Positions 1-27,890 of a stretch of 32,179 nucleotides of DNA are shown here, piece after piece. How positions within the stretch are numbered: the first letter of the stretch is position 1; the number at the start of each line of letters is the position of its first letter. The position numbers and the translations under genes are program-made. Source of the DNA: Chlorokybus atmophyticus (lineage: Eukaryota > Plantae > Mesostigma and Chlorokybus algae). The notes under the pieces were generated by a model that worked only from the letters and a program-made list of their open reading frames with translations, ran no database searches and was not told where the DNA came from. The DNA lies in contig RHPI01001618.1 of NCBI GenBank assembly GCA_009103225.1, forward strand, positions 1 through 32,179. Reading direction: 5' to 3'.

Positions 1-502
1 TCACCGACCAAGGTACTGAGTTCAGAGGGGAATTCGACACCCTTTTGGACAAATGTTACATCGACCACCGCCGTACCTCGCGTGATCACCCCCAAGCCGA
101 CGGCCTCGCCGAGCGGACGGTACAGACCATCAAGAAGGCACTCCGCAAATACGTGTTGGAGTACAAGAAGGACACTTGGGATGACCACCTACCATGGGTG
201 GCCCTTGGGTATCGGTTGTCAAAACAGGCAGCTCTGCGGGAGTACAGCCCGTACTACCTGTTGTTTGGGCGACCACCATTGCTCCCCTTCCGTGCGCAAC
301 AGGAGGTGGATCGCGTCGTGAACAACCTCGACGACCCTGACTGGATGCACCACGACATCACCACGCGCGCCGCACTTTTCGAGCGCACCGTCCCCATGGC
401 CTTCAACAATCTGCGCATCGCGCAGCATCGCGACACGCTGCGCTACGAGCGCGTACGTAGCGGCTTTTACAAGGAGCGCCAACGGCGATTCCAAGCGGGG
501 GA
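1..502 (+). mobile_element. Integrase-core fragment of the DNMT-Gypsy family, near-identical to 4549-5050
   Basis: Position 1 aligns to 4549 and 502 to 5050. I found one difference, g437 vs a4985 (synonymous Thr ACG/ACA). Encodes TDQG...ADGLAERTVQTIKK (integrase D and E). Ends at the N at 503. Confidence 0.95.
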
Positions 503-503
503 N
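503..503. other. Single N, probable contig join or gap
   Basis: An ambiguous base lies exactly where integrase sequence switches abruptly to mid-protease sequence. Confidence 0.75.
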
Positions 504-504
504 C

Positions 505-2262
505 TTCCTCGCGCGGTCCCTAGGCATAACCAGTTCCGACTTGGTGCCTTGCCCGTACGTGTTGGACACTGCCACAGGTAGCCGAGATAAGGTGATGGGA
601 GTCACCAGGGAGGCCTTTTGCATTCGGTTGACAGGGCTGGACCCAACCCACACGACCGAGATCGTCCAGCAATGCGTGGTCACCAATGCCGGCTCCTTCG
701 ACTTTCTGCTTGGGCAGGATTTCAACTTCCCTGTGGGCATGGGCCTCGACTGCTGGACAGAACGAGCGTGGTTTCGGCCACATTGGGATGAGGACGACGG
801 AGAGGTACAGGGCTTCCTGCCTCTCGAGTTGGTCTCGCGCACGCGCGCCCAACGCAAAATGGCTGCCATGGCCACACACAGACACGCCCGCACCCGGAAG
901 GCTGTAATGGCCATATACGACGGTGCTCGGACGCAAGTCGCTGCTGGTGCCACAACCCCGTGTCAAACCGGCGACCCCTCTCCCATCCCGTACAACGAGG
1001 AGCAGGAGGATGCCACCGTGGAAGTAGCATTACAAGACCCAGCTGAACGGCGCTGGCGCGCACAGGTGGACGCACACATCTTGCTCAGCCACCCACTGAT
1101 TACCACGCGCTTCCCCAACTACCGAAGCCACGTCAAGGTGCAGGACCACCATATGGTGGCCACCGGAGTGGTGGAATTCCACACCTTTCGCAGGCAACAG
1201 GGCATCACAGTGTTGGAGCTGTTTGGAGGCATTGGCAGTGGTCTTGCTGCAATCCTCAACACGGGCGTGAAGGTTACCAAATACTATTACTGCGACCCAG
1301 ACCCATACGCGCAAACGGGCCTCAAGCACCACCTACGCCAACTGCACACCAGGTACCCAAGGCAACTACCCCTCTCGGCGTTGCAAGGCAGCCTCAAAGC
1401 GTTGCCACAGGACATCCGGCTAATCACTGAAGATCACCTACTGTCCATCGGCAACGTCGACCTGTTAATAGCGAGATGGGAATGCCAAGGGCACTCCAGG
1501 GCAGGCAAGGGACAAGGCCTCGATAACCCTCGCTCCAGATTGTTCTGGGAGCTGATGAGGATCGTCCACCTCCTGCAACACCACCAGATCTCCAGACCTC
1601 TGGGGTACGTCATCGAAAATGTGCATTCAGAAGACGACAAGCGTCCGCACGTGGCCTCCAGCTACCGACAAGTTTGCTCCATTTTGGGGCACCCACTCAA
1701 GATGAACGCGGCACGACATGGCTCGCGCGCACATCGTGTACGTGCCAAATGGACGAACTTGGCCACCGTGGAGGAGCTCATGACCGCCGAATACACGCGC
1801 AGCGCCCGGCCGCGCAACCTGCTGGTCGACGACATCCTTGACCCCGGCCGCACAGCGCAACCTGTCCTGCATCATGACCACCACCACTTCTACCAGTGCA
1901 ATCAGCCTGGTCAGCCCCGTCGCGCACTCCCCACATTGGTGTCCTACCCGGGCTCCTACGCATTTCGGAACAATGGTGACGGGATGGTATTTGATGCGGC
2001 CACCAACACGCTGGAAGAACCCAACGCACGCGAACGTGAACGCGCCATGGGTTTCTTCCCCAACAGCATCACAGGTTCATCGCTGACGGACAATCAGCAA
2101 TGCCAGCTGCTTGGGCGCGCCATGGACCAGAACAGCATGGTATGGCTGCTGGAGCTGAGCTTCGCGTTGCAGGACCGCCACGTGTCCTTCGAGGATCTCG
2201 AACACTTGGGGCAGCTCACACAGCTCTCGAGGTGGTCCACATGGAGGAGCAAGCGGCAGTGA
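505..2262 (+). CDS. Pol N-terminal part: aspartic protease C-half, linker and C5 DNA cytosine methyltransferase. Frame is open from 505, so the 5' end is missing.
   Basis: The frame reads FLARSLGITSSDLVPCPY... from 505. FDFLLGQDF resembles the retropepsin C-terminal D-h-h-LG-x-DF motif. Methyltransferase motifs follow. Stop TGA at 2260-2262. Confidence 0.85.
   Translation, partial: FLARSLGITSSDLVPCPYVLDTATGSRDKVMGVTREAFCIRLTGLDPTHTTEIVQQCVVTNAGSFDFLLGQDFNFPVGMGLDCWTERAWFRPHWDEDDGEVQGFLPLELVSRTRAQRKMAAMATHRHARTRKAVMAIYDGARTQVAAGATTPCQTGDPSPIPYNEEQEDATVEVALQDPAERRWRAQVDAHILLSHPLITTRFPNYRSHVKVQDHHMVATGVVEFHTFRRQQGITVLELFGGIGSGLAAILNTGVKVTKYYYCDPDPYAQTGLKHHLRQLHTRYPRQLPLSALQGSLKALPQDIRLITEDHLLSIGNVDLLIARWECQGHSRAGKGQGLDNPRSRLFWELMRIVHLLQHHQISRPLGYVIENVHSEDDKRPHVASSYRQVCSILGHPLKMNAARHGSRAHRVRAKWTNLATVEELMTAEYTRSARPRNLLVDDILDPGRTAQPVLHHDHHHFYQCNQPGQPRRALPTLVSYPGSYAFRNNGDGMVFDAATNTLEEPNARERERAMGFFPNSITGSSLTDNQQCQLLGRAMDQNSMVWLLELSFALQDRHVSFEDLEHLGQLTQLSRWSTWRSKRQ
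1201..2160 (+). other. DNMT3-like C5 cytosine methyltransferase domain
   Basis: Motifs occur in canonical order: I VLELFGGIG (1210-1236), IV VDLLIARWECQ (Cys at 1483), VI VIENV (Glu at 1615), VIII AHRVRAKWTN (Arg at 1735 and 1741), IX ERERAMGF, X LLGRAM (2107-2124). AHRxRxxWxN and LLGR match DNMT3-type motifs as I recall them (AHRARYFWGN, LLGRSW). Confidence 0.9.
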
Positions 2263-5200
2263 CAGTGGAGGACATTCCTGTGGTTGCCAATGCAACCTCC
2301 TGGGACCATGCCATTGGCCCGGTGGCCACGGAAGACACTCGAGAGAAGCTGGAGGCTCTCCTCGATAAATGGAGGAGCCAATTCAGCTTCAATGTGAAGG
2401 AATTGGGTACATGTTCGGTGTACCAGATGAACATCGAGCTAGTGGACACTGAGCCGGTGTTCCGGCGACAATACAGGCTCTCCAAGTTGGAAGAAGACTT
2501 GGTGGAACAGAGATGTAAGGCACTGCTGGATGCAGGCCTTATCGAAGAGTCCACATCGGACTTCGCAGCAGCAACCGTCATGCCCCTGAAGAAGGATTCA
2601 GCGGGCAACTGGACAGAGCGACGCATGTGTGGCGACTACCGTCCCCTCAACAACAAGACTAAGCAAGACCGGTACCCCATGCCCACAGCAGAGGGTATTT
2701 TTGATGATGTAGGAGACTGCACAGTCTTCAGCATCCTGGACATGCGTCAGGGGTACAACCAGATCGCCATCAAGGACGAGGACAAACACAAGACCTCCTT
2801 CTGGGGCAACCGCCAGTTGTACCAATGGAAGGTAATGCCGTTCGGGCTGAAGAATGCCCCCGCCAAGTTTCAACGCGTCATGGACAAGGCCTTGAAGGGG
2901 TTGGACTGCGCGCGGTGCTACATCGATGACATCCTCATCTTCAGCCGCAGCAACGAGGAGCATCTTCAGCACATCGAAGCGGTGCTGGAACGACTCAAGG
3001 GAGTGGGGATGACCGTACACCCCGACAAGTGTACCTTCTTCACCCACAAGGTGCCGTACTTAGGGCACATGATTGTGCCTCATGGTGTGTATGTGCAGCA
3101 GGCAAAAGTAGAGGCTCTGGCAGCTATCCCTGCCCCGACCGACCTCACGCGCCTGCGCGCTTTCTTGGGGCTTGCCAACTATTATCGCCGATTCGTGAAG
3201 GACTTCGCGAAGATCGCAAGGCCCCTCAACGAGCTACTGAAAAAGGAGGTGGAGTTCGCGTGGAAGGAGCCGCAACAGCAGGCCTTCGAGGAGTTGAAGA
3301 GCAGACTCACCAGCGCTCCCATCCTTCAACGTCCGGACTACGCCAAGCCTTTCATCCTTCACACCGACTGGAGCAAGCTGGGGATGGGAGCGGTGCTGGT
3401 GCAGCACGATGAGCACAAGAAGGAGCGGGTGGTGGCATACGCCAGCCGAAGCAACAACAGCGCCGAGGCCAACTACAGCAGCTATGAAGGGGAATGCCTC
3501 GCTGCAGTGTGGGCCATCTCCTTCTTCCGACCTTTCCTTTTTGGTCGACAGTTCCAACTGATCACCGATCATCAGCCCCTCAAGTGGTTGATGACCAACC
3601 AACATCTGACAGGGAAACTTGCTCGATGGGCCCTGCTGTTACAAGAATACGACTTTGAGATTGACCACCGCGCTGGCCTCACCAACCAAGACGCCGATGG
3701 CCTCAGTCGCAACCCCCACCTCAGCACCAACGACGCAACTGGAGCGCGGCATGAGCTCATCCCAGCAGCAACAGTTCCCACCATGGCAACCATGTTCGCT
3801 GCTGCCGCGTTGCGCTCAGGGCGCAAGACCAACACCACAACCTCAGCAGTGGTAGAGGAGATTCCTGCCCTCGAGTCTACCGACCCTGCAACAATCACAC
3901 CCTTGGGAGACGCCCACGCCGCCGACGTTGACGTCGATGACACAGAGCCGGCGTCCACTGACACCAGGCAGGACATATGGCACGACAAGCCATCACTCTC
4001 CTTTCTTCAACGTGGCCATCTCCCCTCTGGCATGAGCGCTCGAGAGAAGGACCGGGTCAACCAACGCACCCGTCACTATCGCTGGGCAGGTGACAAGCTG
4101 TATCGCCGCTTCCACGGCGAAGACAAGGAAGTGCCGACACCAGTCACGCGCAAGGACATCATCGCTTCCCTCCACACTGAGCTTGGACACTTTGGTGTCA
4201 AGCGCACAGTCAGTCTAGTGAGAGCACAGTATTGGTGGTATGGATTAACAAAACAGGTGCAAAGGTTCGTCAGTCACTGCCAGCAGTGTGACATGGTGCG
4301 CGCCAGCCTCAACACGCGTAGCGCCACCTTGCACCCACTCCCCATCTCCGGTCTCTTTTACCGGTGGGGACTCGACATCTTGGGGGACTTGGCACCCTCA
4401 GCACGTGGCAACCGTTACATCCTGGTCATGATTGAGCACTGCTCCAAATGGGTGGAGCTGGTGCCATTACCCAACAAGAGCAGCAGGGGGGTGTCTCAAG
4501 CCTTCCTCTCTTACGTTCTCAGCCGCTTTGGCAGCTGCGCCGAGGTCATCACCGACCAAGGTACTGAGTTCAGAGGGGAATTCGACACCCTTTTGGACAA
4601 ATGTTACATCGACCACCGCCGTACCTCGCGTGATCACCCCCAAGCCGACGGCCTCGCCGAGCGGACGGTACAGACCATCAAGAAGGCACTCCGCAAATAC
4701 GTGTTGGAGTACAAGAAGGACACTTGGGATGACCACCTACCATGGGTGGCCCTTGGGTATCGGTTGTCAAAACAGGCAGCTCTGCGGGAGTACAGCCCGT
4801 ACTACCTGTTGTTTGGGCGACCACCATTGCTCCCCTTCCGTGCGCAACAGGAGGTGGATCGCGTCGTGAACAACCTCGACGACCCTGACTGGATGCACCA
4901 CGACATCACCACGCGCGCCGCACTTTTCGAGCGCACCGTCCCCATGGCCTTCAACAATCTGCGCATCGCGCAGCATCGCGACACACTGCGCTACGAGCGC
5001 GTACGTAGCGGCTTTTACAAGGAGCGCCAACGGCGATTCCAAGCGGGGGACCTTGCCTATCGCATGGCAGCCACCAAAGACACGCTTGACACCTCCGTAA
5101 GCCGCACCGTCTACAAGGTACTCAAAGTGTACCCCACAGGGGTGCTGGACCTCCTTGGTCAAAACGGAGAAAGGTTGAAGGACAACATGGTGAACTGTGC

Positions 5201-5435
5201 GCCATGTCACCTCCCTTACGTAGCTGGCTTCGGGCGTATCCAGCACCCTCGTCCTGCGCGCAGCACCCGCTGTGAACACTGCGGCAGCGCCGGCGACGAC
5301 GCACTTATGATGCTCTGCGATGGCTGCAACAAAGGCCTGCATTGCTACTGCCTGGAGCCACCTTTGGACACGATACCTATGGAAGAATATTGGTGCGACG
5401 ACTGCCGTACCAACGGCCCTCCTCACTTGCGCTAG
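2100..5435 (+). CDS. Pol C-terminal part: reverse transcriptase, RNase H, integrase, PHD finger
   Basis: RT: RMCGDYRPLN, LDMRQGYNQI, MPFGLKNAPAKFQ, YIDD (2919-2930). RNase H: HTDWS, YEGECLA, TDHQPL. Integrase: HHCC (LHTELGH...CQQC), DDE (GLDIL, TDQG, GLAER). Tandem TAG TAG stops at 5433-5438. The true start is probably a continuation from the upstream frame near 2208-2211, not the Met at 2100. Confidence 0.95.
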   Translation: MPAAWARHGPEQHGMAAGAELRVAGPPRVLRGSRTLGAAHTALEVVHMEEQAAVTVEDIPVVANATSWDHAIGPVATEDTREKLEALLDKWRSQFSFNVKELGTCSVYQMNIELVDTEPVFRRQYRLSKLEEDLVEQRCKALLDAGLIEESTSDFAAATVMPLKKDSAGNWTERRMCGDYRPLNNKTKQDRYPMPTAEGIFDDVGDCTVFSILDMRQGYNQIAIKDEDKHKTSFWGNRQLYQWKVMPFGLKNAPAKFQRVMDKALKGLDCARCYIDDILIFSRSNEEHLQHIEAVLERLKGVGMTVHPDKCTFFTHKVPYLGHMIVPHGVYVQQAKVEALAAIPAPTDLTRLRAFLGLANYYRRFVKDFAKIARPLNELLKKEVEFAWKEPQQQAFEELKSRLTSAPILQRPDYAKPFILHTDWSKLGMGAVLVQHDEHKKERVVAYASRSNNSAEANYSSYEGECLAAVWAISFFRPFLFGRQFQLITDHQPLKWLMTNQHLTGKLARWALLLQEYDFEIDHRAGLTNQDADGLSRNPHLSTNDATGARHELIPAATVPTMATMFAAAALRSGRKTNTTTSAVVEEIPALESTDPATITPLGDAHAADVDVDDTEPASTDTRQDIWHDKPSLSFLQRGHLPSGMSAREKDRVNQRTRHYRWAGDKLYRRFHGEDKEVPTPVTRKDIIASLHTELGHFGVKRTVSLVRAQYWWYGLTKQVQRFVSHCQQCDMVRASLNTRSATLHPLPISGLFYRWGLDILGDLAPSARGNRYILVMIEHCSKWVELVPLPNKSSRGVSQAFLSYVLSRFGSCAEVITDQGTEFRGEFDTLLDKCYIDHRRTSRDHPQADGLAERTVQTIKKALRKYVLEYKKDTWDDHLPWVALGYRLSKQAALREYSPYYLLFGRPPLLPFRAQQEVDRVVNNLDDPDWMHHDITTRAALFERTVPMAFNNLRIAQHRDTLRYERVRSGFYKERQRRFQAGDLAYRMAATKDTLDTSVSRTVYKVLKVYPTGVLDLLGQNGERLKDNMVNCAPCHLPYVAGFGRIQHPRPARSTRCEHCGSAGDDALMMLCDGCNKGLHCYCLEPPLDTIPMEEYWCDDCRTNGPPHLR
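5271..5405 (+). other. PHD zinc finger (C4HC3) at the integrase C-terminus
   Basis: CEHC-x11-CDGC-x4-HCYC-x14-CDDC, with the LxPPL...P...(Y/W)xC pattern typical of PHD fingers. Confidence 0.9.
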
Positions 5436-5722: not shown

Positions 5723-6901
5723 GATGACCGTACACCCCGACAAGTGTACCTTCTTCACCCACAAGGTGCCGTACTTAGGGCACATGATTGTGCCCCATGG
5801 TGTGTATGTGCAGCAAGCAAAAGTAGAGGCTCTGGCAGCTATCCCTGCCCCGACAGACCTCACACGCCTGCGCGCTTTCTTGGGACTTGCCAACTACTAT
5901 CGCCGGTTCGTGAAGGACTTCGCGAAGATCGCAAGGCCCCTCAACGAGCTATTGAAGAAAGAGGTGGAGTTCGCGTGGAAGGAGCCGCAACAGCAGGCCT
6001 TCGAGAAGCTGAAGAGCAGGCTCACCAGCGCTCCCATTCTTCAACGTCCGGAATACGCCAAGCCTTTCATCCTTCACACCGACTGGAGCAAGCTGGGGAT
6101 GGGAGCGGTGTTGGTGCAGCACGATGAGAACAAGAAGGAACGGGTGGTGTCATACGCCAGCCGAAGCAACAACAGCGCCGAGGCCAACTACAGCAGCTAC
6201 GAAGGGGAGTGCCTCGCTGCCGTGTGGGCCATCTCCTTCTTCCGACCTTTCCTCTTTGGTCGACAATTCCAACTGATCACCGATCATCAGCCCCTCAAGT
6301 GGCTGATGACCAACCAACATCTGACAGGGAAACTTGCTCGATGGGCCCTGCTATTACAGGAATACGACTTTGAGATTGACCACCGCGCTGGCCTCACCAA
6401 CCAAGACGCCGATGGCCTCAGTCGCAACCCTCACCTCAGCACCAACGACGCAACTGGAGCGCGGCATGAGCTCATCCCTGCAGCAACAGCTCCCACCATG
6501 GCATCCATGTTTGCTGCTGCCGCGTTGCGCCTCGGGGCGCAAGACCAACACCACGGCCTCAGTAGTGGTAGAGGAGATTCCTGCCCTCGAGTTTACCGAC
6601 CCCGCGGCAACCACACCCTTGGGAGACGCCCACGCAGCCGACATGGACGTCGATGACATAGAGCTGGCGCCCATCGACACCAGGCAGGACATATGGCATG
6701 ACAAGCCATCACTCTCCTTTCTTCAAAGTGGCCATCTGCCCTCCGGCATGAGCGCTCGAGAGAAGGACCGGGTCAACCAACGCACCCGTGACTATCGATG
6801 GGCAGGTGACAAGCTGTATCGCCGCTTCCACGACGAAGACAAGGAAATGCCGACACCAGTCATGCGCGAGGGCATCATCACTTCCCTCCACACTGAACTT
6901 G
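5723..6901 (+). pseudogene. Second, internal fragment of the same Gypsy family (RT C-terminus, RNase H, linker, start of integrase)
   Basis: Colinear with 3008-4185. An extra C at 6530/6531 (cgc-c-tcg-ggg vs cgc-tca-ggg) frameshifts it. Truncated at both ends. Confidence 0.93.
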
Positions 6902-7045: not shown

Positions 7046-7106
<61 letters not shown>

Positions 7107-7107
7107 N
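7046..7107. repeat. Poly-C run (61 nt) ending in an N
   Basis: C from 7046 to 7106 and N at 7107, directly read. Probably a contig end. Confidence 0.85.
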
Positions 7108-7487: not shown

Positions 7488-8318
7488 ATGACCGATCTTG
7501 AAGTTCAGAGCTTTGGCGGCTTTGGTAAGGGTTTGGTCTTTCGCGGCTTGTGGATGCTTGTGGATGGTGCGACCTGCTTTATGTGCTTGTGCGGCAGGCT
7601 GTATAGTTGATTCAGTCCGTCAAGGGCGCCAAGTTTGTCGGTCTGGGCTTGGCTAGCAGCTACCGAGAATTTTTAAGAGTTTCCAAGAGATTTCGCTTTG
7701 TGCGTCACACCTTCCTGCAATTAGCTAGCTTGGTGGACACTTGTCACTCGTAACCCACGTAGAGTATGCAGGCTAGAGGTCAGTCAATAGCTTTTATGAT
7801 TGCAGCGGCTGAGCAGGCTCAGCCGCTGCCGGGCTCTTGCTGATTGTTGAGGGGCTTGTCGCACTGCAAGTTATATTTCTGACTGGACAAACTGTCTGCA
7901 GATCCCTTCGCGGACGCTGAATCGGAGGACTCTGCCTCCAAGAACTACGTCCATGTCCGTGTGCAGCAGCGCAACGGCCGCAAATCGCTGACAACTGTCC
8001 AGGGCCTGCAACAGGGCTTCGACTACAAGAAGGTCTTGAAGGCTTTCAAGAAGGTCAGCCCCCGTTTCCGCATGACAATGTTGCCTAATGCACTGGATTG
8101 TTTGCAATCCGGCCGTTGTTAGACTCATTTTGGCCAACTTGGGCTAACTTGGGCATGCTGTTATTGAGCAGGAGTTCTGCTGCAACGGCACCGTCGTTGA
8201 GGACCCCGAGCTTGGGCAAGTCATTCAGCTTCAGGGCGATCAGCGCAAGAATGTGTCGCAGTTCCTGGTGCAGGAGGGGATTGTGAAGAAGGAGGTGATC
8301 AAGATCCATGGCTTCTGA
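7488..8318 (+). CDS. eIF1: Eukaryotic translation initiation factor 1 (SUI1), 111 aa. Exons 7488-7524, 7902-8053, 8172-8318.
   Basis: Spliced product MTDLEVQSFGGF-DPFADAE...YVHVRVQQRNGRKSLTTVQGL...VLKAFKK-EFCCNGTVVEDPELGQVIQLQGDQRKNV...IKIHGF*. Both introns are GT-AG and the phases join in frame. Confidence 0.97.
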
Positions 8319-9632
8319 GCAATGGCTGCCAGAGTGCAGCAGCTCATGTACAGATGCGTCAAGGGAGGAGGAACTGATTGTGCAGCCTCAAGCTGCATTT
8401 TTGGTGGAAGTCTATGCACGCAAGTGCATACAGCAACAGCATTGCTTTTTTACGAGGGCACGACCTTTGCCAAGCACTGTCTTCAGGTGGCAACTGCGGC
8501 CGCGAAAATATGCCGCGTTGCATCTACTGTACTAGTACACATGCATTAGGTAGCGTGCGTTTGGTGTCATAAGCAGGCTGTCTGCTCCTAGCTTTGACCT
8601 TGCCTTGCAACATGCTTAACATGCAGCAGTGGGTTTGAAAAATCTGAGCAGCTTGCATGCCAATGTCTCTATTGTGTGCTGAGTTCGGCATGCATATTTC
8701 CTCTTTGCAGCTGGATCTGTGACGGTACAAAAATACCAGTTCAAACTGGCCGCGGAACGTGGTTGGTTCGAAATTTAGTTGACAGGTGCGCAAGTGGGTG
8801 CTCGCGTCATCGTCAAAGTCTCTTTTGCTTCAGCCATGCACTAGCGCAGTACAGGGTGACATGCATACAGAACATTCAAACACAATTGCAGCGTGCACAT
8901 GAATGCTTTGCATGTGTATCACACGCTGTGGGTTGAGTATCTGGGTCGTTTGCTTTCCTTGTGAGTCATCACTTATGCTGATGCTGATGCTGAAGTAGAG
9001 TGGCATACACGTCCACAATATGCACACTTGCACCCACACGCAATGCATGTTTTACCACTGGTCTGCCACATCGTGGCTTTGCTTTTCCTGTTTCGCCCCA
9101 CGGAGGAGGCGGATGTTGCACTAGCAGGGACGACTGCTGGCACCCGTTAGTAGCCTAGTTGCTGTGATTGCTGCTGTGCATGTGGGTTGTGGCTAGGTAC
9201 GGACATGGTGTACGTTGTGCTCGCGTTTTGTTAACGCCAATAGTGTTTGATGATTTCCTGTACACCTACATGCTAACTAATTCCACATGACCTGTTTTTT
9301 ACCACCACCCCAGCCCATCAGTCATGCATAGGGTATGAGTAGCATATTGCACACATGCAGTCTGTGCACACACGACCAACAACAGTAACACTCAAGCGAA
9401 CAAGCAAAGCAACAAACTTACATTACACCCACGCCATCACACTACTCTATGCTAAGTGACCTATGTGCAATGCAATGCCGTTGGTGAAGCAGACAGTAGT
9501 AGCAGCAGCAAACACCAACCAACCAACCTGAGTGCACAAGTGCGGCAACAGTTATCGTGGTAGTAGAGGCTTGGCGGAGACGAACAGCAAGCACGTGTGT
9601 TGTGGCATGTGTGGTGCTGTGCTGTGCTCTAC

Positions 9633-9656
9633 GCATGCATGCATGCATGCATGCAT
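9633..9656. repeat. (GCAT)6 microsatellite, self-complementary
   Basis: Six tandem GCAT units read directly. Confidence 0.9.
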
Positions 9657-10570
9657 GGAGCCTATTGATAAATGCATAGGCAATGACAGTGCAGAGACCA
9701 TATAGCTCTAGCATACAAACAAGCAGATACAACCAAGCAACCGATGCAGTGGTAACACAGTGCAAGTTAGTGTCAGTGGCCTAGCTATAGCAGGCAACAA
9801 GAGCAAAGTAACAATCAGCAGCAACGAGCAAGTGCATGTGTACTGCGTGATTGCTATTCTGACAATGTCATGTTCATAATGTACACTGTGGTTGGCCAAT
9901 CTACAGGATATGTACAAGCTGCCAGAATGACCTTACAGTACTGCCCACGTGATAGCGCTTTTCTGAACTGGAAGAGAAGGGAGGACAGCGTCTCATGTTG
10001 TGGGCAGTAGGTTGCGGGGATTGGATTAGTTGGCATGGCAATAACATTCAGAAGAACTTGCACGGGGCCGGGCGCAACGTCAATTCCGTGCTGGTACATT
10101 GCAATGCACACGTGTGAATACCACCTTCAATTCCTCGTACACGGTTGTATGCACTGTCCACACCAAGTCGTGCTAAAAATGATGGTTATCAAGTATATTG
10201 AAGTCCAAAGCACTACTCTATGCATGCTGTAGATGCTCAGCATGTGGGCAGAGGGGTCCGGGCACAGTACCAAGTTAGCTGAATCATGTAGAACCCAACC
10301 ACCTGAGCTGACATCCATGCTATGCGCACGTGTGAATATGACCTATACCCTACGCGAGCACGCCTTCATGCCACCGCCACCCAACAAAATGGTCAACAGG
10401 CAAGCAGGCCTTGCCTGCATTTGTCGTTGTCGGCGCATACATTACCAATTTATGGACACGAATCTACAACTGCCTGGTGTCAACGCTACATTGACAACTG
10501 TCACTTACATACTAGCAAAAAAGCCCTCATCCTCCGCAGGTCCCTTGAACATGTTGACTAACAAAAGCAA

Positions 10571-13500
10571 TTACCCTTTGTACCGTTTGTGTTCGGCAAT
10601 CTTGCGCTTGCGGCTTGCATGCTTGTGCACATTCTTCTTTAGCTTCTTGCGTGCATGCTTCTCGGGATCAACCAATGCTTCAATTGCGAGTGCCCGCTTG
10701 CGACTGTCTTTCTGACTCCTTAGTCGTTGCCTCACTGCATTGTATCGCTCAACAAAGGTGGTCACGCCGAAAACCTCCTGCAGATGAGGCGTTACCTCCT
10801 CTGCTAGCGCCTTCAGGTCATCTGCGAGGTCACAAGCTGCTCTCATTCTCTGCTCTCCGCATCACGACAAACACATCTCACACACCACTGGTGGGCAGCA
10901 TGCAACAATGGCTTCAGCAGTAGCTATGCAATGATATGCCCTTAAGACCCAGCCCACATGGCGCCATAAGCAAAACCCAGTGCAGTAATGGACTGTTGTG
11001 CTCACCTGAGACAACCTGGCCGGAGGGAGGCTCCCTTACTCTGATCAGCGGCAACACCATTTCAGGCAGGAATGGCTGCGTCACTTTTGGACTCAGCTTG
11101 CTGGTCACAGCAGCAAACCACCGCAATACACTTTGGCGCTGAGTCACAGCGAGCAGGTTCAGAGCATTGTTTCACGGAGTCATGCAAACAACGAAGAACA
11201 GGAGAACACTGTCAGATACCTAAGCCGTAGCACTTGCAAGGAATTTTGTGTTCACATACCTGAACTTCTCCTGGTTTCGTTGCCAGTTTTGACAACCGCA
11301 CAAACAGCCACTCAAGTGGGCTTCGTGATGATCGAGCGCTACCATTTGCTTCACGGTCGTCACCGACTTCCTCATCAATGTCCTCATCACTGCCTTCATC
11401 CGCTGATGACGCGCCCGCATGATTGACATCTTCCGCACGTGCATGCCCATTGGACACGCCGTGTGATGAGGGCAATGTAGCCAAAACGGTAGCAACAAAC
11501 AGCAAGTTCTTGACGATTTGATCAGCGAACTTGGCATCGACATGTTCATTGCTCAGCTGCTCGCACAAAGCCCGAGATATGTGTCGCATCTCAATGGACT
11601 CGAGAGAGCCGGACAGAAGCTGATCAATGGTAACATCCGCCGCAAACAGCAAGCCGAGTAGCCTTGTGGAAGCTCTTCGCACCCACGCATGACGGTGAAG
11701 CAACAGCTCTACAGTAGGACGCCATATCCCCTAAGAAACACGCAGTGTGTCAAAGGCGTGCATTAGGGTGACACCCAAGCAATGTGTATATGTATGTGTA
11801 TATATGAGTGTGTACAAGTGTACATGTAGCGCCAAACTTACTTGCCACTCAGGAGAACTCAACAGGTTGGGCAGGCACTGCAGCAGGCGTTCGAGGCAAG
11901 TGAGCGTGTAGTAGGCCTCCTGCCAGCTGGCGAAGGTTGCCGCGCCGGCCACATCGGCGTCCACCACAGCAGCTCCAGCATCAAACTCCCCGGCCGCACG
12001 CGTCAAGACCGCCAGCATCAGAGGCAAGACCTCTGCTCGCCGGTTTTCCAGCAACTTGCCGTTGCTGATTTGCACCACCAGACCCAACACCTGGCAGGGT
12101 GCAGGCATGCGTACAATGGTCGTGTATAGAAACTGAATGACTCAGTCAATCAAAGCGAATGGATTGGCACAGCTGCAATCACGCACACAACCACTAACAC
12201 ACCCACCTGTATGGCAGCCCGCCGCAGCTGAGCGTCGTTTCCACCATACCATTTGATGGCATAGTCAAGGAACTGCTGGCGGTGGTTGGGAGAGACGCGG
12301 TTCATTAGTAGGCGCATGACGGTCGCGAGCATAGCACGGCATGTGGCGTTTTCGTCGTTCACGAGCCTCGACACCAGCGGAAGGAAGAAGAACTCCGCCT
12401 GCTCGTCGAGAAGAACTTGCGGGAATTTGCTGACGAGCAGATGAAGCATCTCCAGCGCAGCCTCACGCCCCGTGCTGTGCTCGTACATTAGATTGGTCAC
12501 TATGAACTCCAGATGATGCTGCAGCCTTCTAGGGCCCAAAGGATAGTCAAGCAGAAACTGCAGCAGCACCTGCACATGCACCATTTCTTTGTCACACAAA
12601 GCCCATCTTCCAACAATATACTTGCTGAAGAGTGACATGCAGAGGTAGTACCAGCTGTATCATTTAATGCATGCCAGCTGCACCTGAGAGCAGAGGTGCC
12701 TGACAGGAGCAGCCTGACTGCGAACCATGAGCGCAGACACCTTATTCATCAAGTCATAGAGCTCGGGCACAACCAGGCGGCGAGTGACAATGGCTTTGAG
12801 CAGAGCAAATGTCGTGCTTTGCGTGTTGGGATCCTCAATGTCCGTGAAGGCAAAGTTGAGTATGTGCTTCAGCTGCGTATCGCTCACAAGTTCGCTTCGC
12901 TGGCTGTGTCTCAGCAGAGTGGTTAGCAACTTCAAACAGTCCTGAACCAGGGGCGCGGTGTTGCTGCCCGACCGATGGAGGATGTCAAACACGTGTTGCG
13001 TGATGTCGGATGCGCACGCGTCCATTGATGGTAGAGGCATGCGGAGGAGAAGGCAAAGGTTCTTCAGCGACATCGACAGCACTGCCGTCTCACGGGACAT
13101 CAGCGCGCGGGACAACAATGGCACCATCGGGTCCAATAAGGAATGCGTCTCAGTAGCGCTCTCTCCAGTCAGTCCCTTCTTCATCGATGTGTATAACACC
13201 TTCAACCATGGCAAGTGTAAGGTTATACCCATAAGGAACCAAAATGCAAACACTGTACGGGTATAGCTCTCAGTGTGCGTGCTTATGGGCTTACCTGCAG
13301 AGCGAATACAACCAGCACGTTGGTGTTGAGCATAGGTAAAAGGGTGTCCTGCAGGACTTTATCCTGGTTACTCTGCTGCTGGTTCCTGCTGTCCCCATCT
13401 GGGCGCCTACGAAGTTGCTCCAGCTGCAAACCATCGTTCACTGTAGAGTGTATGAAAACCAGCAGCTCTGCTGGCTTGAGCCCCGCGTGTGTCTGGAGAC

Positions 13501-16500
13501 CGCGAGCAATGTGACGCAACATCTCGTCCACTCTGTCACGAATCTTCCTTGTGCCTGGGTTCAAAGCAGGTGTCAATCTCATGCACACGAAAGCGAGGTG
13601 AGGTTGCATGCATTGCTGAGGAGAGGCTCTTGTACAAGTGGTTGTGCGCACAAATCTTACTCTGTGTTGAGTCTAGATGTTCTTTAATGGGCCGCAGAAG
13701 CACTCCGAAATGCGTCTTGAAGGTTGTGACTCGCGTGACAAGCTCGAATGACTCAAAAGACCGACACCGCTTGGTCTCTTTCATTTTGGCAGCAATTGCA
13801 TCCACCTCTCGTTCCTACAAGTGGAGAGCAACCATCAACAGTCGAGGAAAAGGTGACCAACCATGAAAACTTTGTAAACATGGACAGTGTTGGGACACCT
13901 GCTGATGATGTAAATTCCAAGCATTTGCAACAAGCACAACAGACACAAACACAAGCTACAGACCTCAGCTGCGCTTCCCATGATGTCGGACATGAGCATA
14001 TCCACAATGTCTGAGAGGCAATAGTCGATTGCACCGGACTCCATGGCAGGAATGGACTTGGACAGTACCGCATGCAGGGTGTAACCCAGCACATGCACCT
14101 GCCATAGAACGTGCATGGTATCTGTGTTTCTGCTCTCTTGACAGGCCCACAGGTAAGTACGCACGGTGCAAGACACGCACCTGATACCCTTGCGTGAGGC
14201 TCGACTTCAACACATCCACCAGGTAATGAAGGTATGGAGCGCCTAGCTCAGTCGCCATTGATGCCAATGTCTCCCGTGCAGTGTCGCGGATGCTCTGTGA
14301 CCAGCACTCAATGTGAATATGTGTTTCAACAAGAACTACAGCAAAACCTGCTCAAAGCCACACATGCTCGTAATATGTCAATGTTGCGTATGTGCACCTG
14401 CATCCTGCTCTTCATCAGATTAGTGACAGTCTGCAACACGCCCGGCAGCTCAGCTTGCATGGCAGCTTCAGGAAGCAGCTTGAGCACTTTAACTGTCGCC
14501 AGCGCGATTGGCACACGGACACCAGTGCCCTGTTCTCCCTCTTCCAACACATACTTTTTCAACTCGGGGAAGAGTTTGGACTTCAAGGCAGCCGTGATGT
14601 AATCTGGTACTACCACTTCGGGTCCTTCATCCTCGTGGTGTCGCGTCTCATTGACATTATCAGTGGTCGCCACGTCGTGCATATCCACGTCTTCTTTGGC
14701 GTTCTCATTGAAATGAAAGGCATCCAGCAAGGCACAGATGGCCCGAACCAACACTTTCTGACTGGCGGCTTTCTCAGGTAGGTACCGTAGATAACGCATG
14801 AGCAATGAGAAGTACAATCCCCAAGGCAGCTGTAAGGCGATGGCTGCTAGAGCGCGCACGGCTTCATCCATCAAGTTCCCATCTTTGGCGCTCTTGGCAT
14901 CCGTCAGCACATGACCAATCATCGGTACAAACAGCGTGTTCAGGAGGGTAGGTGAGATGGATGACGCTAGCGAGCGCAGCTTCGCAAGGGCACGTATGCG
15001 GCGATGGGTCTGCAAATGCACGATGTTGCTAAAGAAGGCCTGCTCCGGATCTAATGACAGCAAACACTGAAGTTCTGCCATGAAGGTTGGGAAAGCTTTC
15101 ACGATGTCATGCAGCAACCCGACAGCCTCTTGACGAACAGAAAAGTCCTGCCATATACAAAGCCCACATTGACTTTGGTTACACACAATGCGAGTGACAG
15201 CAGTACCACACAACACCATTGTTGCCTCACCTCAGCACTACTAATTGCCAGTGTGATTTGTGGGTACAGCAGTTTGGGAACCAGAGAGCGCACATCGTCA
15301 GGTGCTTGCATGGCATACTCAATAAACAGCCGCAAAGCCTGGGATGCACTCGTGCGCAGGGACAAGTCTGGAGAGTGCAAATCTCTCAGCGCATGGCCCA
15401 GCAGCGGCCGCATACCAGGCACGGATATGCCCGTGTAGTAAGCAGCGTTCATGCGAGCATAAGCCACCATTCGCCTATCATAATCGGGCTCGTCCACCTC
15501 CACTGTCGACCATGCATTTAGGTCTTGCAGCTGCTTTGCCTGTGTAGTAATGTTCCAAAGTAAGCCCGACAGGTTACAAAAGAGACAGCCATGGCAAGAA
15601 ACAGAAGCTGGCATTCAAGCTTGCTACTCATGCAACAAGACAGCAACCGGCCATCAACAAGACTGCCAGCTTGTGTGTTCATGCCAACAACATGCATACA
15701 CGAGGGCACTTACCACTTGCAATGTGGACGGGTCTGGCTGTGACAGCGCCTCGTAGGCGTCACACAGGGCAGTTCGAGCGTCCCGCGTAGAAAGAGTTGC
15801 GAAGAGTGGGGACAGCCTGGGGGCATACTTGAGCGAATCAGGCAGCATGCTGCCGATGCTGCTGATAACGCGGAGAACCTCAACACAGGTACCTGCAGTG
15901 TTGAGTAGTAAGTGTTTTACAATACCCGGTACACGACCACAACAATATGTGAGCGAGTACAACCACTACAAAGACCATGTAGGTGAAAGCAACAAGCACC
16001 TTGCCGCAAGTGCGCTTTGGATTGCAGGAAGGGCAACAGAGTGTCCAGCATTTGGTTTGCCGTTGCGCTGTCTTCGATGAACGGTGCCAACCGTACGCAT
16101 ACTGACAACGCTCTCTTGACTGCCTTCATGGCCTTGCCCTTGCTGCAATCACAAGCAGAGACTATGAACCAAGTCCAGCACCACCACAACAACCCACAGT
16201 TTGCGGGCTGAGAAAGGACCCTAAAGCGCTGAGGCTATGCTGCACTGGCAGATTCAGGAATGCGTAGTTGTTGATGGGCAACAAGCACTGATCAGATTCG
16301 CCTTTGCGGAATCATTGGCATAGAGCCTCATCCGAAAGATGGTGTAAAGTTGTATATCATCATCTCAGTGCCTCTCCATAGCCAGTTAGTTAAAGCAAGC
16401 ACAGGCCCTTCCAATAAACCTGATATGTACGCAGGCAAGTTGACCGGTGCAGGACGAAAGGCCCTTACCTTGAATGATCCAATCGTCTGGCTAACAGCTG

Positions 16501-19500
16501 GCCAACATGTTGCAGTAACAGGCACAGATGCGGCGACAACACCAGGTTAATGAAGTGTTGGCCCGTCTCTTCGTTCTCCGTGTCCAGGACATTGAGCACA
16601 ATCTGCAAAGCGATAACGTTAGCATGCAAAAACAACAACCACAACATGCGTGCAACAGACATTTCAAGAATATAATACCGAAATCACGGAGGCCTCAACA
16701 GCAGGTGTCAGACTCTTGGCCGACAACAACGTAACAAGAGCTGGCATCAGCGTTGCATCCCTTGCAAGCAGTGGTATGAGCTCTGTGTGCTGGCTCATGG
16801 CAACAAAGCACTCAAGGAGGTTACTGGGCCTGTCCCCAGCGGCATCCGATATCAGGCGGGCGACAGCTGGACGCACGGCAAGGAAGAACACGTCCCACGC
16901 AGTGGAGGGGATGTTGTGGGTAGGATGCTTTGCAACGACGCTGTGCATGAAGCGCAGCGCTAGCCCGCGAACCTCCTTGCCCAGCTCATTGCTGGCGTTG
17001 CTGGCATTGTCCTCGAACGCCAGCTGTATCAGGCGCAGCACGAAAGCGATGAGGGCGTTGAGATATGGCAACACGTGCCAGCGCAGTGTTGAGACAGCAT
17101 CCAGCGCAACGTGAAGAAAGCCCACAACTTGTTTTGGCGTAACATTTTGCAACGCATCAAGGTCTATGGCAGACAGCGCGGCGTCCAAGTCAGACAACGA
17201 TGACAGCCAGTCTGGTTGCGTAGCAAATGTTTGCATGGCTATTAAAGGAGCGATGATCAAACTGAATAGTGGAGCCAGTTCATGCGGCTCTAGATGCGAG
17301 AGATATATAAGGGCCGCCTTCCTTGAAATACCTGCAGCCGACTGCACAGCAATATAATTAGACAAACAGGAGCATGTATGTAGTGTACTACACAAGTCTG
17401 CAAACCAACACGCACCCTGCCAGCCACTTTGCCACTCTTCTTGCGTAGTTTCGGAAACATGATGCGCACAATGTGCGGCATGAGCATGCTGCGATCCTTG
17501 GGTTGTACACCTCCAGCATTAACGCTGAGATTCCACCTGTTGAAGAGAGCAAGTCAGAGAGTCTTAGGCAAAAAAGGGAGATATGCGCTGAAACTAACAA
17601 GATGGACAACAACAGCAACGCTTCCAACCAGCAATGCGTCCAACCTGGCCATCTCCTCGCGTGCGGTCTTGTAGTTGATCAGGCGCTCCAATTGTTCAGA
17701 GTAACGCAAAAGAGAAGCGTCCTTGTGATTGTTTAATGAGGCAAGCGTCAACTGTTGGACTTCTGGATCCATGTCCATAAGAAACCTGTGCATAACAAGA
17801 TTGCAGGCATGTAATCACACATGCGCAGCAACAGCTGTGAGCGTACGTACATGACGTTTCCAACAGCAGCATGCTCTCCGACATATTACATGAATATTAT
17901 ATGGATACATTGCTTACCGCTCGAAAAGGATGCGCCTCAGTTCTTCTGATCGATACAAAGCTTTGGCGTTCTTCATTGCCGCGACCACCTTGAGCCACTG
18001 CTTGGCCAGCGCTCGCCATGTTTTCCCGCCCCTTGAAGTGCCCTGGTCTTTGCTAATGCCGCTGCCAGGCACCTCATTCCAATCGCTCACAAACTCTAAA
18101 AACAGAGGAACAACCTGCAAAGCACAGCAACCCTGAGCCAACCATCTCCACACTCGCACATCATGCAGGTGTAAGCGTGTACCTGTCTTGAGTGTCGCTC
18201 AGCAGTGGTAGGCAGCTGCTGTAACGCTTTAAGCAACTGTTCAAACACTGTTGTGAAATTCGTGCTGTCACCCGCAGTATCAGCCTGTACAGCAGCTTGG
18301 AATAAATCAGGCAGGCTTCGCGCAGGACCCTCAGTGTCATCGCTACGAGGTGCTACTGATTGCATCACTGAAAAATCTGCATCAACCAGAGCACGCATCA
18401 GCAAGCGTGTTGAACTGCACGGATTATTCTCACGAGCTGTAGCAATGCACCACCAAACACCAAAACTTCACTAACCGGCATTGAGCACTTGATCTTGGTA
18501 CGCTGTGAGTTGCTGCAGCAGCAAGGGCCACAGCACCACATCATGCGACTCTGCCAGTGCAACCATGACAGCACGAGCAGCATCCCAAACATGGCTGAAC
18601 CTGTGAACACGAAACAGAGTATCAGCAACATCCCAGGCCCTGCATGGGGCTCGCACGTGTTTCGCAATGCATAGCAAGGCTGGCTTCAATTGCAACCATG
18701 CTGTTTGTACTTCCAATGACAAAACGACACAAGCAACATGCACTGTCAGCTACAGGAAGAGCTCTGGCACATTACCTGATGTGGAAGCTGCCAAGCGCTG
18801 AGTGTGCAACTGCCGGCAATAGGAACTCAGGCAACCTATTGTGCTGCACTGCCGCAGCCATGCGCCGCACAACAAGGGTTGACTGGTTCCATTGTTCCAT
18901 GTGCATGGGCGTCTCTTCAACTTGCTTCCACTGATGCAAAACCTGCTCAACCAACAAGTGCATGCTTATGTATATGCAAGCAACTGACGGCCAAGGCCAC
19001 TACGCACAAGCCATGCAAACTTACCTCTGTTTCGCTGCTGTCTGCTTTGCCGAAATGGCACAAAATCTGCAGTGTCAGCAACCTCATGTCCTTATTGGGT
19101 GAAGACAAGTTGGGTGCAAGACACGGGAGCACGTCCAACAGCACCTCTTTGGTAAAGGGGGACTCTGCCCCTTGAGGCAGCATCCTAGATAGACACAAGG
19201 AAAGCAACTTGGTTAACTGCACAATAACGTAAGCAACAGACATACTGGAGACACTATATATGATGTGAATACCTGGCAGTGGTGCTGAAATACTGTGCCA
19301 CAGCAGACAGCATGGGTACAGATTTTGCATGGGTTTTCAACAGCTCCAGCATGCTCGCAACACTAGGCAGCATGTCTGGAGATGCTCGAGGCAGCAAAGC
19401 TGCAATTGCTGAGTGCACGGCACCATACAATGCGGCAACTTCGCTTGCAACTCCTGCAGACGCAAGTAAGCAGCTGTGTGTGCGTCTTTTCCACGCAGCA

Positions 19501-25478: not shown

Positions 25479-27890
25479 TTCCCCCCCACTTAGGTATCAA
25501 TGTCCTCATTGAGGGGTTAGCTAAGCCCCATTACGAGCATTAAAAACCATAGCAATAGAGAGAATCAGGGCCGAAGCGGTAAAGATGTCTGCCAACACCC
25601 TGTTACCGTTCGAGTGTGGACACAGCACTCAAGTACTACTCACAGGAGTAGTACTCCTGAAGAATCTCATAGTAGTTGGTGAGATTACTTTTGGGTTCCC
25701 ATGTATTGTGTTCAACATCGCTGTGCGCAGACAGCTCTTTGCTAACGCCAATTGATCTTGCATGGCTGCAGCCACCTTGCGCGCTGCAGGTACGCGATTT
25801 ACTTCATTATCAGGCAATTAAATGTTTGCAGGACTCAGTGGATGCACTCCGTAATTTAAGAAAAACGGAGTTTCCTGCACACTCGCTTGCCATGCATTGT
25901 TAATCGCGAACTCAGCCATAAGAAGGTAAACATCCCACTCAGACTAGTTCGGACTCACATAACTTATGTGAGTGCCAATGCCAAATGGTTTCCTCAATCA
26001 CTTGATTGACGCAATCTATCTAACCATCCGTATGCGGGTGATAAGCAGTGCTGATATGCTGCTGTATCTGCCGGATGTTGCATAACGATTTTCAAGACCA
26101 AGCCACAAACCGAGGATTACGGTCAGACACAATGTTGCGAGGGAAGCCTGCAACTTTAACACAGACGCGACAAAAACCATTGCCATCTCACGGGAGCCTA
26201 TCTCCATGCGGCAAGAAACCACGTGAACCATTTTAGTCAAGCGATCTACAAACACTGCAACCGTAGTATGACCCAATGCTAACTCTAGAACCTCAGTAAT
26301 GAGATCCATACTTACACTCTCCCACTTGTTATCAGGGATACGCAATGGTCGCGGTGATCCAGCTGGTTTCTGACGTAAAGGTTTGTCACATTGACATTTG
26401 TCACACGTGTGCACATACTGCTTCACATCAACAGGCAACGATGGCCACCAATACAACTGTTGCGCTGGTGGTCTTGCGACTGCCAAAGTGCCCAGCGTAC
26501 GATGGATCGTGTACATCGGTTATGCATTTCACACGCAAATCAGCATGATCGGGTATAACCAAACCAGTGCCCATGTAATACAAGTTGTCACGGTTTTCAA
26601 GCTTTTGCACGTTTTCTGCTAAAGAAAACCAGGGGTATGAGAATACCCTTGCACAACTGCTTGAACAAACTCATCATTTGGAGATGATGAACCGCATGTT
26701 GCAATCAACTGCGCGCGCACGACCGCCAGTAATGACGGGCAACAACTCAGAGGGTCAGCTACATTGGTTCTTCCCGACAGGTACACCCAATCAAACGAAA
26801 AACGGGATAAAAACTCATTTCAACGCGCTTGTCGTCGTGACAAGTTTTGCTGTGTTCAGAAATACACCAATGGGTTATAATCAGTCACTACAGTGAACTG
26901 AACCCCCTCCAAGTAACATCACTATGTTTCCAAGGCATGTACTACGCCAAGTAGCTCTTGTTTGGTTGTAGTATAGTTCACCTCTGCAGGAATGAACTTC
27001 CTACTCTCATAAGCACAAGGCCTGCCATCTTGCAACAAGATTGCACCACACCCAAGTGTTGATGCATCCCTTAAAACAATGAAATGCTTTTCCCAATTTG
27101 GTAGCGCCATCACTTAACACCGGCGCCGACATTAAAGCCAATTTCACTTGTTGCATAGCAGCTTCTTGAGCTTGTGTCCAGACAAATGGGGCATTTTAAT
27201 GCAACAATTTGGTCAAAGGCATGACAACTGTCGAGTATCCCATTATAAACTTGTGAAAATACTTCCAACCCCAAGATTGACCTTAATTGATGGACATTTT
27301 GAGGTTGAGGCCACTCTTTCACAATTTGCACTTTGCGAGGGTCAGGCTTGATGCCCGCACCACTCACATTGTGAACGATGAAAGGCAACTCTATTTTGCA
27401 AAAATCCCAGTTTGTCAAGTTTGCAAACAAGCGATGTTCACGAAGTCGTGCAAACACCGCTTCTACATGTTGCCTATGCTCTTCCTTTGTTATACTGTAG
27501 ACAATAATGTCATCTAAGTAAACCATGACATGTTTGCCAAGCATGTCATCAAAAATTTCATTCATTTCCATCTGAAACACCGCGGGCGCATTTGCCAATC
27601 CAAAAGGTAACACTTGGTGTTGATACTGGCCTGAGGGTGTTCGGAATGCTGTCTTGTAGACAACAAAAGATGAATGCGGATTTGATGATATCCGCTTGTC
27701 AAGTCCAGCGTACTAAAATACGCATTTCCTGACAACTTATCAAACACATCATGAATCCTTGGCAACGGGTATCTACTCTTTACCGTGATTTTGTTTAAAG
27801 CACGGTAATCCACACACATGCGCAACTTCCCATTCTTTTTTAATCACAAACAAGATAGGCGCGTCAAAGGGTGAAGAACTTGGTTCAATC
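25479..27890 (-). pseudogene. Decayed chromovirus-type Ty3/Gypsy pol (RT, RNase H, integrase, chromodomain remnant) with PPT
   Basis: RT: [40 protein letters not shown]. RNase H: DAS...KQELLGVV. Integrase: GHFG...CDKC, SMDLIT, VDRLTKMVH, TPFFLNYG. Chromodomain remnant EHNTWEPKSNL (25713-25636). Several stops and frameshifts. Confidence 0.92.

Follow-up and report, generated by a model that had tools for sequence, protein, structure and literature searches.

A broken, divergent Gypsy-DNMT3 retrotransposon copy in Chlorokybus atmophyticus and the putative leaky-stop boundary of its relatives

Why should a transposon carry the type of enzyme that its host uses to silence transposons? The question is raised by a stretch of 32,179 nucleotides (nt) of the alga Chlorokybus atmophyticus (assembly GCA_009103225.1, contig RHPI01001618.1, positions 1 to 32,179; hereafter the window), in which a cytosine methyltransferase domain resembling DNMT3 lies in the pol region of a Ty3/Gypsy-type retrotransposon. 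We read positions 520-5435 as the truncated, no longer functional remnant of a Gypsy-DNMT3 element, a retrotransposon present in many copies. Pieces of two sister copies flank it, and in it protease, DNMT3-like C5 methyltransferase, reverse transcriptase (RT), RNase H, integrase and PHD finger follow one another in this order. To this reading a probability of about 85% is assigned. To judge from sequence comparison, the locus is a broken and divergent member of a published class and makes up a separate deep lineage, not a new kind of element. The main copy and the adjoining pieces are laid out as follows (ORF, open reading frame).

1..509 (+): integrase-core fragment of a sister copy, running off the left end of the window; 99.4% identical to 4549-5058, similarity stopping at 509
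520..873 (+): C-terminal half of a retropepsin-type protease (LLGQDF motif); tblastn of relatives P0121 (520-873), P0277 (499-801) and P0110 (499-777), frame 1
1141..2175 (+): DNMT3-like C5 cytosine methyltransferase domain (conserved core 1198-2172), in the frame of the protease; Pfam, PDB sequence and profile searches, AlphaFold2, Foldseek, family alignments
2209..2210 (+): frame break, frame 1 to frame 3, within a GGGG run (2208-2211); tblastn frames, sequence, sister contigs
2210..5435 (+): RT-RNase H-integrase-PHD, single open frame to 5435; Pfam on ORF 2100-5435 (frame 3)
2260..2262 (+): TGA ending the frame-1 (protease-DNMT) ORF
2616-3074 (+): RT; Pfam RVT_1, 114 bits
3261-3650 (+): RNase H; Pfam RT_RNaseH, 129 bits
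4146-4304 (+): integrase zinc finger; Pfam Integrase_H2C2, 59 bits
4362-4637 (+): integrase core; Pfam rve, 37.5 bits
5271-5405 (+): C-terminal PHD finger; Pfam PHD, 32.8 bits
5723..6901 (+): fragment of a third, older copy (RT C-terminal half, RNase H, linker), 287 nt past the pol stop; 94.7% identical to 3008-4185; tblastn

Pieces of a single retrotransposon family make up a mosaic over the leftmost 8 kb of the window, where the G+C content is ~58%, against ~50% further right. At 509 the integrase fragment of the sister copy gives way abruptly to the protease of the main copy, and a single N is found at 503, six bases away. The main copy has neither gag nor the N-terminal half of the protease; its frame-1 ORF (541-2262, 573 amino acids) encodes the remaining half of the protease and the methyltransferase domain. 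What remains is the relic of an element: it starts within the protease, its frame is broken ahead of RT, four near-invariant residues are changed, and terminal repeats are missing. The first three of these defects exclude the methylating role that a preliminary description of the window had suggested for this copy. The same description had set the methyltransferase in frame with the protease half and just upstream of RT, and both statements are correct; RT itself, however, is not in that frame, but begins in frame 3 after a -1 change at ~2209|2210.

Contig pieces matching the window at 85-100% identity number 745 and 317 in the sequencing runs X1 and X2, which come from different studies. Other copies in the data of the source organism carry the DNMT domain too: sister contigs of 423 and 578 nt, ~96% identical, run across it and cover 987-1988 (run X2). 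Since sister contigs span the domain, the DNMT is not a one-off capture, an outcome that the preliminary description had left to the family copies to decide.

The methyltransferase domain and its carriers

The C5 methyltransferase motifs I, IV, VI, VIII, IX and X, reported earlier for positions 1201-2160, were recovered by translation and in family alignments, in canonical order and with the catalytic Cys, ENV and RxR residues; the interval fits the conserved core of the domain.

1213-1242 (+): motif I, LELFGGIGSG
1471-1497 (+): motif IV, ARWECQGHS; Cys codon 1483-1485
1606-1623 (+): motif VI, YVIENV; ENV at 1615-1623
1720-1761 (+): motif VIII, GSRAHRVRAKWTNL, which contains HRVR
2029-2055 (+): motif IX, RERERAMGF
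2098-2133 (+): motif X, QCQLLGRAMDQN

The Pfam profile PF00145, proposed earlier as a check, matches the domain significantly (35.1 bits against a gathering score of 22, E 1.3e-8). The resemblance to DNMT3 was likewise upheld by PDB sequence and profile searches, and by Foldseek. Among solved structures, the sequence search ranks DNMT3A, 3C and 3B first (E 3e-8) and two bacterial enzymes far lower. A family profile of 66 members, searched against solved structures, scores 93 bits with DNMT3A, ~83 with DNMT3B/C, 58 with DRM (half domain), 45 with M.HhaI and 34 with DNMT2; DNMT1 gave no match at E<=0.01 in this search. The AlphaFold2 model built on the 66-member alignment has a mean predicted local distance difference test score (pLDDT) of 95.6 and a predicted template-modelling score (pTM) of 0.93. 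All 50 top Foldseek matches of the model are catalytic domains of DNMT3A/B/C, with a template-modelling score of 0.82, normalized by target, and E 7e-19 to DNMT3A. A full HMMER scan returned 256 clusters (50% identity) at E<=1e-30, nearly all in long pol-like proteins; as they span the whole domain, the match is far beyond chance. By sequence and predicted fold, the domain is nearer to DNMT3 than to DRM, DNMT1, DNMT2 or bacterial enzymes, and is a complete, non-rearranged DNMT3-type domain, unlike DRM.

Host DNMT3A/3B/3C (PDB 2QRV, 6W89, 6U8P, 8TCI) are thus the best matches by sequence, profile and fold, and share with the window domain the non-rearranged motif order, a short target-recognition region, and the patterns AHRxR..W.N and R...LGR in motifs VIII and X. 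Identity is 20-22% only. The window domain differs in having neither PWWP nor ADD reader domains, in residing inside a retroelement polyprotein, and in featuring Trp-Glu-Cys where DNMT3 has Ser-Pro-Cys.

Retrotransposons of this class were described by de Mendoza et al. 2018, who reported KnitGypsy-Dnmt3 from Klebsormidium nitens and held that the acquisition had taken place 'in the K. nitens lineage' (PMC5890265); the assignment of the K. nitens element to the DNMT3 class is that of the tree in the same paper. Papers from 2025 and 2026 treat 'streptophytes (Gypsy-DNMT3)' as known. No paper linking Chlorokybus, DNMT and a retrotransposon was found in the literature searched. The K. nitens element and the window copy have the same order, protease-DNMT3-RT-RNase H-integrase-PHD, are intronless and multi-copy, and their DNMTs fall into one clade. 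At the K. nitens locus compared (L001), protease lies at 7668-7955, DNMT at 8740-9965 and RT-integrase-PHD at 10487-13850. The two elements are ~35% identical in DNMT and 39-43% in RT-integrase, and differ in motif IV, which is Pro-Cys in K. nitens elements and Glu-Cys in the window lineage. In place of paired long terminal repeats (LTRs), KnitGypsy-Dnmt3 has DIRS-like split direct repeats (Fig. 4c legend, PMC5890265); none were found in the window copy, truncated at both ends.

Pfam detected the order protease-DNMT-RT also on P0023, P0035, P0040, P0106 and P0110, and pol relatives bearing PF00145 were found in Closterium species, in Marchantia polymorpha and on many metagenome contigs. The DNMT tree, built without rows for canonical DNMT3, DRM and DNMT1, places the window inside a protease-DNMT-RT clade with K. 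nitens, Closterium and Marchantia, separated with support 100/99 from a second architecture described below. Within this clade the window is a deep branch of its own, apart from the K. nitens clade, at the unresolved base; the nearest database DNMT is 49% identical. With at most this identity to any database DNMT, and 35% to that of K. nitens, the earlier suggestion of a new lineage of the class stands. The class had also been called known though rare: it was indeed published in 2018, but it is not rare, as hundreds of diverged clusters exist, with named members in four genera (Klebsormidium, Closterium, Marchantia, Scenedesmus). A 455-residue 'DNA cytosine methyltransferase' (P0280, NCBI) from a metagenome-assembled genome of Candidatus Obscuribacterales sits deep inside the eukaryotic Gypsy-DNMT clade, and probably comes from a eukaryotic contig that was binned wrongly.

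Most of the nearest DNMT domains reside in proteins ordered otherwise, as RT, RNase H, DNMT, integrase, PHD. This second architecture, which occurs in P0122, P0140, P0070 and P0039, was identified by Pfam on P0169, the pol protein of a chlorophyte (Scenedesmus sp. PABB004), among others. In the DNMT tree a single branch separates the two architectures, with a support of 94 in the Shimodaira-Hasegawa-like approximate likelihood ratio test (SH-aLRT), and 100/99 in a careful subtree. When the RT-RNase H tree is rooted on plant Gypsy elements, the DNMT/PHD elements all fall into a single clade (SH-aLRT 89). The second architecture makes one clade there (support 100), nested among elements of the first; of its 63 rows, 61 have this architecture and two are truncated proteins without a detected DNMT. 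The DNMT and RT trees agree in outline. As the second architecture is a single nested clade in one tree and a sister branch in the other, the sequences fit a single acquisition of the domain, which later changed its place in pol once. No mention of the second architecture was found in the methyltransferase literature searched.

Two other known systems invite comparison. SymbioDIRS-Dnmt3 of Symbiodinium, likened here by description only, is likewise a retroelement-borne DNMT3-type domain, but it is carried by a DIRS element, which has a tyrosine recombinase, in a dinoflagellate host, and its acquisition is held by the authors to be independent; it is the only retroelement DNMT3 shown to methylate CG de novo in yeast (PMC5890265). 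Chromoviruses, Ty3/Gypsy elements with a C-terminal chromodomain on integrase, also have a chromatin reader fused to the integrase C-terminus. In the elements described here, in contrast, the reader is a PHD finger, and a DNA-modifying enzyme is carried as well.

The boundary between methyltransferase and reverse transcriptase

The closest pol relatives start just ahead of RT, and many DNMT relatives end just past DNMT. On the contigs of relatives the DNMT and RT ORFs lie in one frame, separated by one stop codon, in the contexts listed below (positions in brackets), to which the matching place in the window is added.

L002 (2475), L003 (5408)/L004 and Marchantia L009 (8374, KZ772763): TAG-CAA-CCA
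L008 (4131): TGA-CAA-CTA
L007 (3409): TGA-CGG
L010, Closterium: TAG-GAT-GAG
Window, 2247..2255 (+): GAG-CAA-GCG in the RT frame, 18 codons ahead of a conserved W-x-x-x-I-G anchor; junction comparison with L002, L003, L008 and L009, and the 59-locus survey

The TAG-CAA-CCA loci checked (L002, L003 and Marchantia L009) are 60-64% identical in ORF2, and the bases flanking the motif differ; over all loci compared, ORF2 identity is 39-64%. In 30 further loci among L011-L087, too, an in-frame stop followed by CAA-CCN (or by CAG-TTA, CAA-TCA or CGG) stands between DNMT and RT; in most relatives its distance ahead of RT is fixed. In L008, a Glu-, Arg- and Lys-rich stretch of ~475 additional codons (2705-4131) separates DNMT from the stop.

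The boundary was surveyed in 59 loci having both a DNMT end and an RT start. DNMT and RT share the frame in 41 loci, and at least one in-frame stop separates them in 40 of these. A stop followed by CARYY is found in 35 of the 41, Marchantia included, against a background of CARYY at 0.75% of codon starts; among loci with a single stop, 24 of 26 have the motif. The stop is TAG in 28 loci, TAA in 6 and TGA in 1, and is located 33-132 nt (mostly 33-75) ahead of RT homology. Half of the loci in which the frames differ (9/18) keep the stop-CARYY motif in the RT frame. The junction of the K. nitens copy has several frame changes and no stop-CARYY, and is uninformative.

UAG-CAR-YYA (type I, tobamovirus; CARYYA) and UGA-CGG (type II) are documented read-through contexts (PMC3542737). 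As with type I and type II read-through and gammaretrovirus gag/pol (PMC3542737), the relatives have one in-frame stop in such contexts at the ORF1/ORF2 boundary. Unlike the gammaretrovirus case, the boundary follows protease-DNMT and not gag, and the commonest context is CAA-CCC, not CARYYA proper; read-through is a prediction from the sequence. The stop looks like a conserved read-through site, which would place DNMT at the end of ORF1 (Gag-protease-DNMT); we infer that RT to PHD are made by read-through. In the preliminary description the DNMT was embedded in a Gypsy pol between protease and RT. This order is right, but the single polyprotein it implies does not apply to the relatives, in which DNMT ends ORF1 before a stop.

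In the window a sense codon occupies the place of the stop, and the frame break lies upstream. By position, GAG-CAA-GCG is likely the counterpart of the in-frame stop plus CAA-CCN of relatives, with its context degraded; the read-through signal in the window is absent or decayed.

Proposed cycle and alternative readings

The survey and the trees suggest a broader picture, for and against which we see about equal odds. Gypsy-DNMT3 would be no peculiarity of the Klebsormidium lineage but one old green-plant retrotransposon lineage, with named hosts among streptophyte algae, the liverwort Marchantia and one chlorophyte (Scenedesmus), and with traits so far undescribed. The DNMT would end ORF1 before a conserved leaky stop-CAA-CCN, be produced, like Gag, in excess over RT and integrase, and might be packaged for the methylation of cDNA; a large sister clade would have the DNMT moved between RNase H and integrase; Pro-Cys would toggle to Glu-Cys, the other catalytic residues being fixed; and the window lineage would be a further deep branch, with the stop lost or altered.

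In intact members, ORF1 (Gag-protease-DNMT) would be the main translation product. The conserved in-frame stop plus CARYY would be read through occasionally, to give Gag-protease-DNMT-RT-RNase H-integrase-PHD, and the protease would free the parts. DNMT, supplied from the abundant ORF1 product, would be in excess over RT and integrase. Using S-adenosylmethionine and the invariant Cys, ENV and RxR residues, it would put 5-methylcytosine on new cDNA or on insertion-site DNA, while the PHD finger would steer integration to particular chromatin. Following the proposal of de Mendoza et al. 2018, we favour the view that methylation of cDNA or insertion site may make the new copy resemble resident, already methylated DNA.

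By itself, the locus adds a host lineage and a deep branch to the published class. The comparison with its relatives suggests that one Gypsy lineage of green plants has carried a DNMT stably, widely and for a long time; among its hosts is the model liverwort Marchantia, a plant open to genetics. The putative leaky-stop boundary, the second architecture and the Glu-Cys motif are new at the level of the lineage, and an enzyme predicted from the abundant upstream ORF offers cheap tests of why a transposon carries the transposon-silencing enzyme of its host.

Several observations weigh against this picture or against the reading of the locus. No terminal repeats (LTRs) or split repeats were found in the window, an absence that says nothing because the copy is truncated at both ends. 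The stretch was found in none of the RNA runs, which is no evidence of silence. The window has the sense codon GAG where relatives have a stop, and intact copies in this genome may or may not carry the stop. The four residue changes may be private to the copy or common to the family in this genome, 40 of 441 contig differences having been listed. Motif IV is Glu-Cys here and in about half of the relatives, so chemistry or substrate may differ. Finally, the KnitGypsy-Dnmt3 domain gave no detectable methylation in a yeast test, regarded by its authors as inconclusive (PMC5890265).

The last two points touch on the alternative that survives best, though it is unlikely: that in this lineage the domain, with Glu for the Pro of the catalytic loop, has ceased to methylate DNA, and either has RNA as its substrate or serves the particle as a structural or targeting component that does no more than bind DNA or S-adenosylmethionine. 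Instead of the canonical Pro-Cys, motif IV of the window has Trp-Glu-Cys (Glu-Cys at 1480-1485). Among 134 relatives the motif is WEC in 61, WPC in 40 and FEC in 8, K. nitens copies having Pro-Cys; Glu-Cys or another non-Pro form is found in 70 of the 134 by a strict WEC/FEC/SEC count, and in more if Ser or Asp are included. These counts and the silence of KnitGypsy-Dnmt3 in yeast would suit a loss of DNA methylation, and the 2018 authors raised RNA methylation for another transposable element DNMT (PMC5890265). Pro and Glu, however, alternate within the clades of both architectures, for which reason the residue seems tolerated and is no mark of a switch in function; Glu-Cys is, on the alignments, a lineage trait and not damage. 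Moreover, C115, E159 and N160 (motif VI), both Arg of motif VIII (R199, R201) and G30, the first Gly of FGG in motif I, are invariant across 66 diverged sequences, and the predicted fold superposes on DNA-bound DNMT3A/B. The ratio of nonsynonymous to synonymous substitution rates (dN/dS) is low, 0.11-0.17, weak support as it comes from the three usable pairs, two of which share a locus; in K. nitens, Ka/Ks is below 0.2 (PMC5890265). As the catalytic residues are invariant and dN/dS is low, the sequences speak for a working enzyme in intact members.

The window copy itself departs from the family in residues other than the Glu. Arg112 of the domain (codon AGA, 1474..1476, +), in the catalytic-loop motif IV, replaces a Gly found in 96% of the 134 relatives. 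Asn for Asp (AAC, 1705-1707), Ile for Thr (ATC, 2068-2070) and Gln for Arg (CAA, 2098-2100) are found at further near-invariant positions, the four being 95-98% conserved in the 134-relative alignment. Compared in aligned rows with the commonest residue of the family, all four are G-to-A or C-to-T changes. CpG decay, considered as a trace of methylation, was dropped: observed/expected CpG is 0.79-0.83 in the element and 0.67 in a host gene, and the listed transitions fall outside CpG.

These changes bear on a second alternative, in which the breaks arose in assembly and the real locus carries an intact or almost intact element. The N six bases from the join at 509, the GGGG run at the frame break, a homopolymer of the sort at which long reads typically err, and the mosaic of near-identical repeats, which assemblers may join wrongly, all lend themselves to it. 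We consider it improbable nonetheless, as genuine decay is indicated by the four residue changes and by the fragment of a third copy at 5723-6901, and a one-base insertion or deletion is not among the differences listed at 2209|2210. High-depth sister contigs, among the contigs of public runs, match the window up to 2209, diverge, and match again from ~2236: record 12 of run X2 stops at 2209 with 49 unmatched letters, record 3 of run X1 begins at 2236, and in one sister contig 36 bases that differ from the window separate 2209 from 2210. The divergence covers at least 26 bases and is no simple one-base difference. As the sister contigs diverge at 2209 and resume at ~2236, we read the frame break as a local lesion and not a designed frameshift, the lesion being placed from matched contigs only. 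The length of the linker was also considered as a sign of deletion, and rejected: its 95 amino acids are within the range of relatives (76-203).

A designed frameshift is the third alternative. A programmed -1 ribosomal frameshift between the protease-DNMT and RT-integrase ORFs would replace the leaky stop, as in the pro/pol shift of some retroviruses. The direction is indeed -1, the ORFs overlap by 163 nt (2100-2262), and relatives have a putative recoding site at the DNMT/RT boundary. The overlap, however, holds no X-XXY-YYZ slippery heptamer, and sister contigs differ from the window exactly at the break. Frame changes occur in 18 of the 59 relatives without a common pattern, and half of these keep the stop-CAACC motif in the RT frame, as decayed copies would. 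The frameshift is accordingly rated very unlikely.

That a single Gypsy copy captured a host DNMT3 fragment by chance, without meaning for the family, might be supposed from the one DNMT copy in the window, but is refuted by the ~96% identical sister contigs spanning the domain, by the 256 diverged clusters that hold it inside pol-like proteins, and by the agreement of the DNMT and RT trees.

Other features of the window

A second single N, at 7107, marks the end of a short tandem repeat (7046-7106); the N residues at 503 and 7107 may denote assembly joins. At the right end of the window (28660-32179, +), frame 3 is open for 1173 codons up to the last base. A Closterium Gypsy-DNMT element shows weak similarity, in its gag and zinc-knuckle region, to one part of this frame (~29524-30090; 26%, E 4e-11). 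The region shows no DNA similarity to the left-hand copies, and may be the 5' part of a related element. A decayed Ty3/Gypsy RT-RNase H-integrase, 30-38% identical to the family and interrupted by several frame changes, is located at ~25710-27900 (-). Exons of the host gene UTP20 (small-subunit processome) lie at ~11200-17400 (-), where Pfam detected UTP20_N, UTP20 and UTP20_C on successive ORFs.

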